DNA of 64,000 nt, from NCBI GenBank assembly GCA_009103225.1, contig RHPI01000193.1, positions 62,001-126,000 of the forward strand. Reading direction: 5' to 3'. This document shows, one piece after another, positions 1-42,066 of the stretch. The position numbers and the translations under genes were made by a program. Positions within the stretch are counted from its first letter, which is position 1; each line of letters starts with the position of its first letter. The notes under the pieces are model-generated. The model was not told where the DNA came from, made no database searches, and saw nothing but the letters and a program-made list of their open reading frames with translations. The stretch comes from Chlorokybus atmophyticus. Its lineage: Eukaryota > Plantae > Mesostigma and Chlorokybus algae.

Positions 1-3000
1 TGAACACCAACCCCGGCGAGAAGGTTCTCATCAGGCTTCACGGCTCGGACGCTGAGAACGGCACAGAGCTGGACTTCATCTTGACTGCTCTGCCCCACAA
101 GGGTCTTTTGTACGAAGCCAACAGCCGAGGCAGGACGCGTGGCGGCCCTCTCAACGCAATCAACACCAAGGTTGACAACTATGTCGTGTACGTCCCGGAT
201 GCCAATGGCCGCGACAGTGGCGACGACGTGTACGACAAGTTTGCGTATGTAGCTTCAGATGGCCTCTTGTTGTCACAAGAGGCTTACATCAGCATCCACG
301 TCAACCCTGTCGGCTTCGTCGCTAGCCCTGTTGCTGGTGATGCTGGCTATGCCCTGTCCTTTGATGGTGTTACTGACAAGGTAAGAGGGTGTGCTGGAAG
401 CAGGGTAATAATGTAACACAAGTTCTGAGCAACCCACAAGCACTGACCGACTGGTGCGTGCAGGTGGTGTTGAAGTCGTTGCGATCATATGGTGCGAACG
501 AGTCCATGACCATCGAAGCCTGGTTCAAGACCTTCGCCAACACGCTTGTTGATGACATGACGCTGGTTAGTGCGGGACCCTTGACCGTATACTGGTCGCG
601 TGTGGCCGGCCTGACCATTAGCATCAACGGCGTGGAAGCCAGCACTTACGCCGCATACAACGATGGCTCCTGGCATCACCTTTCAATCTCAGTAGGTGAC
701 AATGCGACCTCCATCATCGTCGATGGCGAGTTGAGGGCTTTCAGTCTGCTCGGCAATGTGGCAATGGCAGTTGACGAGCAAGTGGTCATTGGCATTGATG
801 CCGATGGTCTGGGCGCATTTGGTGGCCAGCTCGACGAGTTGAGCATCTGGTCGCACGCACGTAGCGTGGATGAGGTTGCACACAGTGCTCAGGGCGCTCT
901 GACGCGCGGCGCTAAGGGGCTGAAGGCATACTACAGGTTCAACGAAGCACAGGTGCGTCTTAGTGTGGTTATGCAATTTCAATAGATTACAAGGGCATGC
1001 AATGAATACATTTGTGTGGGGCTCGGGTTGTGCTTTGTAAGATGAGACTGAGTGTTTGTGTGCAACTGTGTCACAGGGTTCTGGCATCACTGATGAGGTT
1101 AGTGGCCATCTGCTGGAGGACGCTCTGGGTGGCAGCGGTGTAGCGGAGATGCAGCCTACGTGGGTTGTCTCAAGCGTTGGTGTTGGCAATGTTGCCAATG
1201 CAACGCAGGGCGTGGATATGCTGCTGAACCTGACTGGCTCGTCGGAGTCCATGGATACTTACGACCTGATCATCGTGGAGCTCCCGAGGCAAGGCGCTTT
1301 GTATGAGGTGGAGGCCAACGGCACTCGCGGAACCAACATCACGTACACGCCGTGGGCGGTGTCCACCAGGGCCGTCATCTACAACTCTGGCTCATACAGC
1401 GGCGCATTTGGGGACAACTTTGGCACATTTGTATATGTTGCAGGCGAGGCTGATGAGGTTCTGGACATCAACTTGGACACCTTCTACGATCATCAGGCGG
1501 ATCAGTGGTCACTTGGGCGTGTGTCGCCACACCAGGCATATGTTGTACATGTTGCGCATCGCCCGGTTGTTGTGATCACAATCAATGAAGACCTCGCACC
1601 TGAGCCGGTTGCTGATGAGCACGCGGTGATGCCGATTGCGGGAGAGGCGGGCGCGGCGTTGCAGTTTAACGGCGTGGCCACAGAGATGACGCTCGGGCGT
1701 GTGCACAACTACCTGAACGACAGCTTCACGTTGGGCTTGTGGTTCCGCACGACGGCGGCCCCGTCGCCAGCTGGCATGGCGCTGGTCAGCTCCGACTTCA
1801 TCTCCATCGGTTGGGACCTTGTGTGGGGTCTGCATGTGCGCGTTGGAGAGTACATCGCACCTACTCTGCAAAACTTCAATGACGCCAGCTGGCATTTCCT
1901 CGCCGCGGAGTGGAACACAACTTACCTGTCAATTTATGTGGACGCGCAACACTATGCATCCATCCCAACTTTACCGTACCTCCAAGTCAATGACTCACTG
2001 ATTGTAATTGGCGTAGACTCGGTTTGCGATGGCTTCAACGGTCAGCTCGATGAGGTTTCAATCTGGTCTGTGAGCGTTGCCGACAATGTGTCCAGGACTG
2101 CTTTTGAGGACAGAATACCTTTCACTGGCAATGAGACCGGCCTGGCGGGTTACTGGCGGTTTAACGGCCATGTGGACGCTGTGTTGTTCAGCGAAATGGC
2201 TGTCTACAACAGCAGTGAAGAGGAGTTTGTGTTCGGGGAAAGTGGAAAGGTCAACACACAGCCGGCGATTGTGGCATCAACGATAGCCAACTTCTCAAGA
2301 CCAGTTGTTACTAATGAAGACGAGCCTGTCGGCATTCATGTTGTGGCCTTGACGTTCACTGAGGATGAGCAAGCAACCCGGCTCAAAATTGTTCGTGCCC
2401 CCTACCATGGCAAGTTAACCCAACATGGACACAGGGTCAGGCAGGACGACAGTGTGAGCGCAGACGTGTTGGTCTACACGCCCGATCTGCATTACGTCGG
2501 TGTCGACAGCTTTGTTTACGCTGCGGATGATGGCGTGCAACAGTCTGACTCTCATGAGGTGAACATCACCATTATCAGAATGCAGCATCGCCCGACCGTA
2601 AGAGACATTGAGGTCGAGGCCAACATGCACAGCTGGGAGCCGGTCACCATCCATCTGCATGGCCACCATGTGCACTATGAGCCACTCGTGTACTGTGTCA
2701 CGACTCTGCCTGTCAGCGGGTTACTCTACGATCCCACCGACAACACGACGGACACGCCTCTCCAGCCTAACTCTTGCTTGGTCTCCGGCCGAGTCATTGT
2801 GTACACGCCGCTACCAGCCGTTAACGCATCAGCGGGTGATAGCTTCGGCTACACGGCCAGCACGCATGACGGGTGGCTAAGTGCAGAAGGCCGCGTGACA
2901 ATCACTCCCGAGGCTGTATTCCTCCCACCCGGCAGCACACCTCTCCCGGGTGCGGGTGGCTTTGCGCTTGCGTTCAATGGCGATTCGGTTGCCACACTTG

Positions 3001-6000
3001 GCAGCATTGGCGACCATGGTTTGGGTTTAGACAACGATGCATCCTTCGTCAACGAGATGACCCTATCAATCCAGTTCAGAACGGCTTATGCAGCAGAGGG
3101 CAGCACTCTGATTAGGTTCGGCCCGCTCGCGTTGGAATGGAGCAGCGCGCTCGGCCTGTACGCTGTTGTTGAGGAAGGTGCCAATGATGAAGTGGTGCTG
3201 CCAACATACCAGCCATGGAATGATGGCGTGTGGCACATTGCTTCGGTTACAGTGAATTCAACGCACGCGAGCTTAGCTGTCAACGGGAGCGTCTTGGCTG
3301 CGCAAAAAGTCGCCAATGTCACCTTTGTTGCTTCTGACGTGGTTGTGTTGGGATCCAACTCACCTTCAGAAGGTTACTTCAAGGGTGAAGTGGATGACGT
3401 GCGAGCGTACCTCAACAGCTTGAACGTAGCGCGCTTCTTTTTCAACGAGGATGTCGGCTCAGGACTCATTAACAATGTCACGGGCATGCTTGGCGGCGAG
3501 CTTGGCTACAATGGTCATCTCACCCCGCAACGCGTACCCTCAACCGCGCCAGTTGATCTGTCTTTCATGACCGAGAGCGCCATTATGAGGCTGTCGGGGC
3601 CATCTCACCGCGACATGGGCGACTTCTACATCATGAACCCAAGCTTTGTGCGCTTTGTTGTGTCGGACGCCACGAACCATACTCAGGTAAGTAGCTGGTT
3701 CAGGACTCATACCCGCAACCATGCACCCTCACGCACACTCTAACATGACACCTACCCAAATGCAGATGCCTGTGGTCAGCCTCACTGAGATATCAGATGA
3801 TGCCCACATGCTTGCTCCCACCGGAGGCAACGGTGGCTACGCCCTGTCCTTTGCCGGTGACGGCCTCTCGTACGTGTCGGTGGCCAACGCTGACATCGAG
3901 GCCGACTCGTTCACAGTGGAAGCTTGGATCAATAGCAGCGACGGCATTGATGTTGGTACCATTGTGGCTTCGGAAGCGTTTGCATTGCAGGTGAGTCAAT
4001 GGATGACAGCATAGAGTCTCCGGCGTCTTTTGCAAGTTGTGCAAATGCAGCAATTGCATGCCCCCAACCTGTTTGTCTTTGACAGGTGCACTATGCGCTT
4101 GGAGCCGTGTTTACGGTCAGGACTGGTGCTGGCCCTGTGAGCGTGGAGAGCTTTACCCAACTCAATGATGGCAACTGGCATTATCTGGCGGGCACCTGGG
4201 ACAGTCTTGGCACAATCAAGGTACCACACCGTGGCTAGAGCAGCTTTCACGTGCAGTCCTGCTTGCAATGATGGTGTCACAGTTAAAATTGTGCATATAG
4301 GCAAACACGTGCGTGTTAACATGACAGGTGTATGTTGATGGCGAGCAAGTGGGATCAGCAACAGTGGACTCCTATTCTGGCGTGCCCCTTATCCACTTGA
4401 TAACCATTGGCCAAGACATCGACGGCATGGACTCGTTTGCAGGTTTTATTGATGAGGTCAAGGTCTCAGATATGGCGTTCAACGCTGCGGAATGGGAGCC
4501 GGAGGCACCCTACTACTGGGATGCTGCAGGTACTATACCAAAGCAATGTGTGGTCTCAGCTACAGAGGGTGCACTGTTGCTAACTGTGTTGCGCGCATCA
4601 ACAGGCTTGTCGGCACCGCAATATGGCATGCCTGGGTTGAAGGCCCATTACAGAATGAACGAAGGCTCAGGGTCGCTTGTCAGTGATGCGAGCGGGTTCG
4701 GCCGTATGGGTGAGGTCCACTCTTCTGGAACACTTGCCTGGGTGATGGGCGCACCAATGGACAACTCTGTCACTCTTGCGGAAGACACCGAGGCAACTGT
4801 CATCTCCTTGCAAGTGTCTCCAACACTCACTGCTCGCGCTGTCATTGCGGGACTGCCAGCAAATGGAACTCTGTTTAATACCGCTGATGGGCTCGAGTTT
4901 GGAGAGGAGATTGAGTCTGTGCCTGCGTTGGTGACCAACGACAACGGTCTTGTCGTGTATGTTCCTGATGCGGACTTCAATGGCGAGGACCATGTGGCGT
5001 ACTATTCCATGGATCAGGAAGGACGCATCACGGACACCATCATTGTGGCGCTTGATGTTAGGGCCATCAACGACCCGCCTGTGGCCACGTATGTGTCAGC
5101 CAATGTCTCCATTGACAAGAACACCGATGCCTTGTTGAGGGTGTCTGGTAAAGATGTCGACGGGCCGCTCTCCCCGCCACACGTGTATGTTGTCACGCTT
5201 CCTCAGTTTGGCATGCTCTACCAAGTCGACCACGACAACATGACCGGCAACATGATCACGGAAGTGCCGAGCCTTGTGGAGGGAACATACGTGCTATACG
5301 TGCCTGATGTCAACGGCTACGGTGACCCTTACGACGCCGTCACGCTCATCTTGGTTGACTCTGAGGATGAAGTGTCCATGACGGAAGAGATCACCATACC
5401 TATCACGGTCAAGCCAACCTTCTTGGCTGCCGACCCGCACGCACCCATTGATCAGCCAGCTGTACCAGTAAACACGCCCGTCGCTGGTGAGAGCGGACAT
5501 GCTCTGCGGTTTGATGGTCAGACAGTATCCGTCACATTGGGTACCTCAGTGTTCTCCGCAAACGAGTCCAACATTGATGTCAGCAATGTCAACCTTGACT
5601 TCAATGGCACCTTCACGATGGAGCTCTGGTTCCGCACGTCAGCTGTGCCAGATGACTACACGACGCTGATATCAAAGGGTGTTGTGCCTCCTGTGTTCGG
5701 TGACCACTCATACTCGTTGCACTGGACCAAAATGTTTGGCCTTGGCTTCTACGTCACCACCGCCGATGGGTACACCACCGCTGCTGTGGACCCTGAGAAC
5801 CCGCAGTTCCTCAACGACGGCGCGTGGCATTTTGTGTCTGCGGTGTGGAGCACAACCGGTGGCTCTGCCTCAATGTATGTGGATGGCGAGTTAATCGCCA
5901 CAACATACTGCGACGAGTGCGAGCTGGGCATCACTCCTCTCATCGTCGACGAACTTGTCACGGTCGGCAGAAGCGCCAGTGATGTCACCACTCAGTACTT

Positions 6001-13432: not shown

Positions 13433-14025
13433 ATAAATGCGCTCCCCTTTCACCGCTCCTTGAGACAGACCAGATCGGACCAGACCAGCTGCGCTCAATA
13501 ACACCCCTGTCCACATGTAAGCACGTGCATACACAATATCACTGACGCACAGATCACACACAAGCACGCCCCGCATTGTTTGTAAAGAGTGGGTAAGGTA
13601 CATAGCCCGGTGATCGAAATGTGTTAAGTAGATGATTATGTGTGGTTGACATACGTTTGTTGGTGTGCATCGTATTCAAACGTGTACTGCACTGTTGCAT
13701 GCACGCAATAGCGTCTGCGATTGCCTGTATCTGGACAAGGCATCCTGGACATACAAGACAGATGTACAAAGCACGCAATCGTACACAAGACCAGGCTGTG
13801 CAGATATATTTACGCACTGCTGAACTCCAGACACGAAAGGTCTCCAAAAAACATACAATGTGTATGTGGTTCACATGTTACGAGATGACAACATGTCTAC
13901 ACAAAGATCATCCAATATATCAGCTTCTACCGTTTTGACTAGTTCGAGTTTCCTCTAAAAACAGCAGGCAGGCGAGCGAGCGAGCGAGCGAGCGAGCAGT
14001 CAGCAGCAGCAGCAGTGGTGTTGTT

Positions 14026-14812
14026 TCAGTAGTAGTTCCTGCCCTGGTTCATGTTCTGGTTCATGCCCTGGTTCTGCTGGTCGGGGCGCTGGACAATGAA
14101 GCCAGCGCACTGGACCTGGCGCTGGGCGTCGAAGCCAATGACACGGATGAAGGCGTTGGGGTAGCTGCGCTTGGCCTCGCCAATCTCCTGGAGCACCTGC
14201 TGGGAGTTGGTGCAGCCAAAGAGGGGCAGCTTCCACATGGTCCAGTAGCGGCCGTCATAGTAGCCTGGGCCAGAGTTGTACTCGCGTGTGACAAAACCCT
14301 CGTGGTCGAACTCGATGCAGGGGATCCAGCCCTGCTGGAGGAGGTAGTCGATCTGCCTGGCGATGCCGTCGGCAGAGAGAGGGGGGAGGTAAGACATGGT
14401 CTCGAACTTCTTGTTGTTGAGGGGGTTCCACACCTGACACAAGAGGATCACGGTGAGGAGAAAGCACTGGGCTCCGCCAATGCAAGCTGCTAGCGCAGGC
14501 ACAATGAGACACTCAACCACCACACGCATTGAGCACAGACGACTGGCACATCCCACACTACTAGTACATAGCGTTCACACCTAGCACACAACAGCACAAG
14601 CACAAGCACAGCAACCAGCAGCCGCCGCCTCCTACCTGCATCATGGAGACTGTGGCTCCATTGGAGACTGTCCTCTGGCTGAATGAGGCGGGTGCCTTGC
14701 CGAAGGTTGAGGCGGCGCTCTTCCTGAGGCCGGTGAAGCCAGCGACGGGCTTGGCCGACACCGAGGCGACAGCGGCGGGGACCACGGCGGCGGCGCTGCT
14801 GATGGCGGCCAT
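14026..14812 (-). CDS. rbcS: RuBisCO small subunit precursor (194 aa) with an 18-aa Q/N-rich C-terminal extension
   Basis: Exon 1 14812-14636 encodes an Ala/Ser-rich transit peptide ending MMQ. Phase-0 intron 14635-14434 (GTAGG...TGTCAG). Exon 2 14433-14026 has [38 protein letters not shown]. Confidence 0.98.
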
Positions 14813-14964
14813 GATGCTAAGCAGATAATGAACTGATGCCTCACGATGGCTCGAATGCACTTTATGTACTGCCTGTCCTAACCGGTTAATCTTGACTGTG
14901 GTTCGCCAACTGGCTGCTGGCCAGCCCGGCTAACCGTCTACGTAACCGTGCTTGACGGTGGAAG

Positions 14965-39397: not shown

Positions 39398-39649
39398 NNN
39401 NNNNNNNNNNNNNNNNNNNNNNNNNNNNNNNNNNNNNNNNNNNNNNNNNNNNNNNNNNNNNNNNNNNNNNNNNNNNNNNNNNNNNNNNNNNNNNNNNNNN
39501 NNNNNNNNNNNNNNNNNNNNNNNNNNNNNNNNNNNNNNNNNNNNNNNNNNNNNNNNNNNNNNNNNNNNNNNNNNNNNNNNNNNNNNNNNNNNNNNNNNNN
39601 NNNNNNNNNNNNNNNNNNNNNNNNNNNNNNNNNNNNNNNNNNNNNNNNN
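39398..39649. other. Assembly gap (N run) flanked by G runs
   Basis: Direct reading. Confidence 0.99.
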
Positions 39650-41896: not shown

Positions 41897-42066
41897 NNNN
41901 NNNNNNNNNNNNNNNNNNNNNNNNNNNNNNNNNNNNNNNNNNNNNNNNNNNNNNNNNNNNNNNNNNNNNNNNNNNNNNNNNNNNNNNNNNNNNNNNNNNN
42001 NNNNNNNNNNNNNNNNNNNNNNNNNNNNNNNNNNNNNNNNNNNNNNNNNNNNNNNNNNNNNNNNNN
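41851..42066. other. Poly-G tract (41851-41896) followed by an assembly gap (41897-42066)
   Basis: Direct reading. Confidence 0.99.

Follow-up and report, generated by a model that had tools for sequence, protein, structure and literature searches.

A short glutamine- and asparagine-rich tail with a 12-nt repeat on a Rubisco small subunit of Chlorokybus atmophyticus

The alga Chlorokybus atmophyticus encodes a Rubisco small subunit (RbcS) that continues past its conserved C-terminus into a lineage-specific, low-complexity tail of 18 residues. The gene is a genuine, transcribed nuclear rbcS with two exons and lies on the minus strand at positions 14812-14026 of the window, the whole 64,000-nt stretch of contig RHPI01000193.1 analysed here. 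Chlorokybus is an early-branching green alga within the streptophyte clade most distant from land plants. Tails on eight subunits could plausibly, in principle, serve as stickers between Rubisco complexes. We consider it probable, though far from certain, that the tail is a tolerated and nearly neutral product of replication slippage with weak or no function, and not a driver of condensation.

Gene structure, transcription and paralogs

The product of exon 2 matches the small-subunit domain over the entire profile (PF00101, profile positions 1-97 of 97, residues 10-117, E 1.7e-37, 127.7 bits at a cut-off of 27). The match stops at residue 117, which is the proline of IVQRP, and leaves the 18 tail residues outside the domain. 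RbcS chains in the PDB match the exon 2 product with up to 197 bits, and green-type chains are the best matches to the core. The top structure match is chain M of PDB entry 9pvb (197 bits), above the leaf-type chains of spinach and pea, and its aligned sequence is that of tobacco RbcS with an ...IQKP end. Exon 1 contributes an Ala/Ser-rich leader of 57 residues, after which the conserved mature N-terminus M-Q-V-W-N-P begins. Exon 2 and the full-length public entry served as queries for database searches, and the joined exons were compared for identity only. The best database match of exon 2 is the Chlorokybus protein Chlat1/9225 (Chrsp99S08505, 194 residues), with 100% identity over exon 2. 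The joined translation of both exons equals Chlat1/9225 exactly, hence the gene model including its tail is already public. An exact look-up of Chlat1/9225 in assemblies gave no record, and a search of the available papers found no description of Chlorokybus RbcS tails. Within the 64-kb window, tblastn found no second rbcS. Runs of N, which represent assembly gaps, occur in the window at 39398-39649, 41897-42066 and 57053.

Table 1. Features of the rbcS gene in the window, with the evidence for each.
Feature	Position	Strand	Evidence and remarks
rbcS exon 1	14636-14812	-	start codon, transit peptide and first two mature residues; 59 codons; open reading frame and exon joint in runs X1, X3 and X4
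Single 202-nt GT..AG intron	14434-14635	-	joint 14431->14634 (cut +2) in three runs; ends GTAGGA...TGTCAG
rbcS exon 2, RuBisCO_small domain	14083-14433	-	117 codons ending IVQRP; Pfam PF00101
18-codon Q/N-rich tail ending Tyr-Tyr	14029-14082	-	translation; outside the Pfam domain; transcript contigs extend across the tail to the 3'UTR
12-nt tandem repeat, 3.3 copies	14035-14074	-	TRF score 59; 12-nt deletion (6+6) inside the array in run X3
TGA stop codon	14026-14028	-	translation
3'UTR, at least this far	13850-14025	-	contigs of X1, X3 and X4 reach 13850, the edge of the compared stretch

Four public runs were compared with the window over 13850-14900, and because they are stored as contigs they show presence and not quantity. 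The joint between exons 1 and 2 occurs in X1, X3 and X4, three runs under one organism label, so these runs are RNA or contain RNA. A 332-nt contig of X1 is identical to the window over 14134-14029 and again over 13958-13850, and the 70 letters between the two matched blocks correspond in number to the repeat stretch skipped in the comparison. This layout indicates a transcript in which coding sequence, tail and 3'UTR follow one another without splicing. X4 is arranged likewise and carries two substitutions within 14029-14106. X3 lacks 12 bases inside the array (6 at 14057 and 6 at 14065), which amounts to one unit fewer and a tail of 14 residues. In X5, which has another organism label, one contig of low depth spans 14029-14273 and shows 15 differences from the window. 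Over 72-82 nt of matched 3'UTR, X3 and X4 have only 1-2 differences, which identifies these sequences as orthologues of the window gene and not paralogs. Expression and conservation of the tail were both points that the sequence-only reading had proposed to check, and neither refuted its idea. Contigs span the tail in X1, X3 and X4, and the tail is retained in related samples (at least three, under one organism label), one of them with the shortened array. If the samples are different (cryptic) Chlorokybus species, the tail would have persisted for 24-76 Myr (PMC8611356). An annotation or splicing artefact as the source of the tail was rejected, because the contigs are unbroken from coding sequence through tail to 3'UTR.

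Most of the rbcS depth in the runs belongs to contigs that differ by 5-15% from the window gene. Several of these paralog contigs, seen as loose ends in X1 and X4, part from the window gene precisely behind the second Gln of its tail, at 14074. On the coding strand the loose ends read D-Q-Q and then G-F-G-Q-Q-Q-F-G. Hence at least one strongly covered paralog ends in IVQRP-D-Q-Q followed by a Gly/Phe/Gln tail. The window gene and its paralog or paralogs share the genome, the core and the D-Q-Q start, and both tails are low-complexity with aromatic residues. They differ in what follows, since the window gene has the N-Q-G-M repeat instead, and paralog contigs are far deeper. Contigs of the window gene have depths of 320-505 in X1, 187-235 in X3 and 2,843-4,424 in X4. 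Paralog depths reach the thousands (3,795 for one X1 contig), with summed bin depths of 1e4-1e5, although the depth of contigs reflects expression poorly. The depth of gene-specific contigs is roughly a tenth of that of paralog contigs, and on this basis the window gene is provisionally a minor isoform. Word searches with the last 45 and the last 60 residues of Chlat1/9225 retrieved no Chlorokybus paralogs from the protein collection. In one X3 contig with a depth of 12,296, 12 other letters link 14419 to 14634, which suggests a paralog with a different boundary region between exons 1 and 2.

The low apparent transcript level would also suit a tail that is absent from the mature protein, either through C-terminal processing or because the isoform is hardly translated. 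Such an absence appears highly improbable, given a reading frame that is intact and continuous in transcripts and a codon bias of the coding type in the tail itself.

The tail, its repeat and the tails of other small subunits

The tail follows IVQRP directly, with Gln or Asn at 10 of its 18 positions, and it includes two Tyr, which form its end, and one Arg. This composition and length had been recognized from the sequence, and the translation as well as the limit of the Pfam domain agree with it. The usual predictors of prion-like domains need about 60 residues or more (PLAAC core length). The tail had also been called prion-like, a term that its Q/N-rich composition supports but that its length of 18 residues makes an overstatement.

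The array detected by TRF has a period of 12 and 82% matches, and its units encode NQGM, NQNM and NQGR in the cleanest register at 14038-14073. Three imperfect 12-nt units had been proposed at 14041-14076, and the array corroborates them with a shift of one codon. The window contains 8 arrays with a period of at least 7 and a score of at least 59, compared to 1 in total in 20 dinucleotide-preserving shuffles. The tail repeat therefore exceeds chance. Counting all TRF arrays, the window has 29 versus 0-1 per dinucleotide shuffle. Two microsatellites directly follow the stop codon in the 3'UTR, (GCGA)6.5 at 13972-13997 and (AGC)6.7 at 13995-14015, which marks the locus as prone to slippage.

Without the 12-residue repeat, the tail reduces to D-Q-Q-N-Y-Y. 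Klebsormidium-type RbcS proteins have short tails such as GQAFF, GQAMF, GQSNF, GQAQF and G-Q-Y. The resemblance of the remainder to these tails suggests an old, aromatic-ended tail within which the repeat expanded. Most likely, replication slippage would have tripled a 12-nt unit encoding N-Q-G-M inside an older short tail with a D-Q-Q start and an aromatic end. G or C occupies the third position in all 18 tail codons and in 102 of the 117 domain codons. The GC content is 0.47 in the 3'UTR and 0.61 in the domain. The codon usage of the tail thus fits long-standing translation better than recent capture of untranslated sequence. The candidate explanation of the tail as a recently captured 3'UTR was rejected on these grounds, as 18/18 codons ending in G or C are set against a UTR GC of 47%. 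The 12-nt indel was likewise discarded as evidence of selection, because the slip of a whole unit is in frame by construction and is uninformative either way. Retention of the tail in at least three samples and the exclusive use of preferred codons would also fit a selected function.

Among the best 120 homologues, tails after the conserved Pro have 0-10 residues, except for Chlat1/9225 and four longer outliers. Phe or Tyr forms the end in 47 of the 117 homologues with a tail that could be delimited (40%). Angiosperm RbcS with a core ending in ...IQKP carry Thr/Ser-rich tails of 6-10 residues among these 120 homologues. Like the Chlorokybus tail, the angiosperm tails are short low-complexity stretches after the conserved Pro, but they occur in plants without pyrenoids and are rich in Thr and Ser instead of Gln and Asn. 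In Chlamydomonas RBCS1, 14 residues follow VQRP (construct sequence, bioRxiv 2020.08.16.252809). The tail of Chlamydomonas reinhardtii RBCS1/2 resembles the Chlorokybus tail in continuing past VQRP and in its comparable length. It differs in being charged and neither repeat-derived nor Q/N-rich, and condensation there proceeds via EPYC1 bound to helices A and B. Given the Chlamydomonas and angiosperm tails, additional C-terminal residues, including low-complexity ones, appear ordinary for RbcS even where pyrenoids are missing.

The Q/N composition of the Chlorokybus tail is without a counterpart in a word search confined to the tail region. The search with the last 45 residues of Chlat1/9225 found no protein with a similar Q/N tail, and its three candidates all lacked a tail. 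Extending the query to the last 60 residues, so as to include fragmentary proteins encoded on short contigs, gave no candidate. When metagenomes were scanned for sequences that could encode FIVQRPDQQ in any back-translation, the single match was a chance one, in antisense inside a bacterial open reading frame resembling a sensor histidine kinase. A separate environmental RbcS (JGI sample 3300034362, contig Ga0326783_016183, 318-938) combines a Klebsormidium-like core ending in ...FIVYKP with a Ser-rich C-terminal extension of 87 residues. S-W-[ED]-x-A-P occurs three times in the extension, twice with S-F-F-G after it. As a small subunit with a linker of its own, the environmental protein is a much better candidate than the one with the Chlorokybus tail.

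In another reading, the tail is a docking peptide for a different protein and not a self-sticker; its terminal aromatic pair recalls the Phe and Tyr C-termini of other RbcS. Such a partner could be a pyrenoid scaffold, a protein with a fused RbcS domain, or an assembly or import factor. With no known partner and no motif match in the tail (the Pfam match ends at 117 and the word search gave no similar tail), we regard docking as improbable.

Predicted structure and known routes to Rubisco condensation

AlphaFold2 was run with an alignment of 30 sequences. The predicted pLDDT is about 54 in the tail compared to 88-94 in the best core blocks. One nominal helix of 12 residues is placed at 119-130 with low confidence and with two Gly inside, and no strand is predicted. 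The prediction contains no confident helix or coiled coil in the tail. According to the model, the tail is probably flexible, with at most a weak helical propensity. Small subunits of the red type are longer at the C-terminus by about 30 residues, which fold into a betaE-betaF hairpin. The Chlorokybus protein does not correspond to this type, as its tail has 18 residues and no predicted strand and its core is green-type.

The core encoded at 14083-14433 (minus strand) ranks first in Gln (10) and joint last in Lys plus Arg (11) among the 30 aligned RbcS. Both surface helices contain QQ, with ...LLQQG in helix A and NSQQVL... in helix B. Either a drift towards CAG/Gln in general or adaptation of the surface to Gln-rich tails may account for the Gln-rich core. 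Aligned to spinach RbcS, the matched Chlorokybus stretch is one residue shorter, and aligned to Chlamydomonas RbcS it is seven residues shorter, in accordance with the plant-length betaA-betaB loop described in the sequence-only reading.

In Chlamydomonas, EPYC1 contacts RbcS through salt bridges at D23, E24 and R91 and through hydrophobic contacts at M87, L90 and V94 (He et al., bioRxiv 2020.08.16.252809). Alignment offsets to the PDB chains give A/D/Q/L/Q/G as the Chlorokybus equivalents of positions 23/24/87/90/91/94. L90 is the only identical contact residue, and an Asp at position 24 retains the acidic charge. The earlier claim that helices A and B lack the EPYC1-binding residues is thereby upheld, with the addition that the acidic charge is kept at 24. 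The contact residues are reported to be conserved within the Volvocales only (bioRxiv 2020.08.16.252809). Their absence from the Chlorokybus protein is therefore expected and says little.

The closest precedent for an RbcS extension that acts without a linker is RbcS-STAR of the hornwort Anthoceros agrestis, whose C-terminal extension condenses Rubisco via coiled coils (Robison et al. 2026, as reviewed in PMC13655443). The review's account of RbcS-STAR supports the earlier statement that a much longer extension drives condensation in hornworts. As described there, RbcS-STAR shares with the Chlorokybus protein that it is a nuclear isoform in a pyrenoid-bearing streptophyte, with an extension past the conserved C-terminus and a valency of eight. 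According to the same account, RbcS-STAR has a long extension with two predicted alpha-helical coiled-coil domains, is the second most abundant isoform and was shown to condense Rubisco. The Chlorokybus tail, in contrast, has 18 low-complexity residues and no confident helix, belongs to an apparently minor isoform, and is at most a candidate for condensing Rubisco. The two helical domains capable of forming coiled coils that characterize RbcS-STAR are not found in the AlphaFold2 prediction of the tail. A weakly dimerising sfGFP on RbcL is reported to suffice for Rubisco condensation (cited in PMC13655443).

In Ulva, RbcS with a C-terminal YFP tag still enters the pyrenoid matrix (bioRxiv 2026.07.16.738900). 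By analogy, this would be consistent with an RbcS C-terminus that is exposed and tolerant of additions. Ulva RbcS2 has an annotated disordered C-terminal extension, for which the authors judge a role in assembly unlikely given an expression of about 3% of RbcS1 and a doubtful gene model (bioRxiv 2026.07.16.738900). Ulva RbcS2 and the Chlorokybus gene both come from green algae with pyrenoids, and both are apparently minor isoforms whose C-terminal extension is unusual. They differ in the gene model, which is firm in Chlorokybus and doubtful in Ulva RbcS2.

Possible roles of the tail and significance

Chlorokybus has two pyrenoids per chloroplast, one sheathed in starch and one naked (PMC8611356). 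A tail that functions as a sticker would present eight copies per holoenzyme and engage in weak homotypic Tyr-Tyr, Tyr-Arg and Gln/Asn polar-zipper contacts with tails of neighbouring Rubisco or with their Gln-rich helices. Condensation might thereby be aided without a linker, by this tail alone or together with the paralog tails. RbcS-STAR and the dimerising sfGFP, as presented in PMC13655443, offer precedents for such a role, and the presence of two pyrenoids points in the same direction (PMC8611356). The transcription of the tail, its persistence in related samples and the preferred codons throughout its length would also suit a sticker. The same holds for the paralog tails with Gln and aromatic residues, as read from the loose ends (G-F-G-Q-Q-Q-F-G), and for the core as the most Gln-rich of the 30 aligned, with its QQ pairs in both surface helices. 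These points are countered by the small size of the tail, whose 18 residues include only two Tyr and one Arg, and by a structure prediction with nothing confident in this region. The gene-specific contigs are shallow, and the Ulva authors dismissed the extended RbcS2 on similarly low expression (bioRxiv 2026.07.16.738900). The repeat copy number is also not fixed between samples. Finally, a tail of similar length exists in Chlamydomonas, which depends on EPYC1, and low-complexity tails exist in angiosperms that lack pyrenoids. On balance, we regard a sticker function as unlikely, though it deserves more weight than docking or absence from the mature protein.

A broader proposal extends the sticker to the whole small-subunit family of Chlorokybus, with linker-free Rubisco condensation through low-complexity RbcS tails rich in aromatic residues and Gln. 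Two tail chemistries, one Gly/aromatic in the major isoform, the other Gln/Asn/Met ending in Tyr-Tyr in the product of the window gene, would then tune condensates or sort Rubisco between the starch-sheathed and the naked pyrenoid. Self-linking would in that case have originated independently of the STAR coiled coil. We see only a slim chance that this proposal is correct.

The near-neutral slippage product remains our preferred reading of the tail. A flexible tail would project from every one of the eight small subunits, at both poles of L8S8, where C-terminal additions are tolerated. The tail could at most make weak Tyr/Arg/Gln contacts, or, in holoenzymes of mixed composition, it could dilute the major isoform's stickier Gly/aromatic tails. 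The presence of pyrenoids in Chlorokybus combined with the missing linker-binding residues counts against a near-neutral tail. So does the possibility, by analogy with sfGFP on RbcL as cited in PMC13655443, that weak homotypic contacts at eightfold valency can suffice for condensation.

As reviewed in PMC13655443, the hornwort result indicates that a small-subunit extension alone condenses Rubisco, which makes such extensions attractive for pyrenoid engineering in crops. If the Chlorokybus RbcS tails are stickers, they would provide a second and chemically different route with very short tags. The tail of the window gene is the weaker candidate for such a role, and the major paralog is better suited for testing. 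The main value of the finding lies in the rbcS paralogs of an alga with two pyrenoid types, which carry different low-complexity tails from a common D-Q-Q start. The window gene and its paralog form a simple, testable pair of natural variants.
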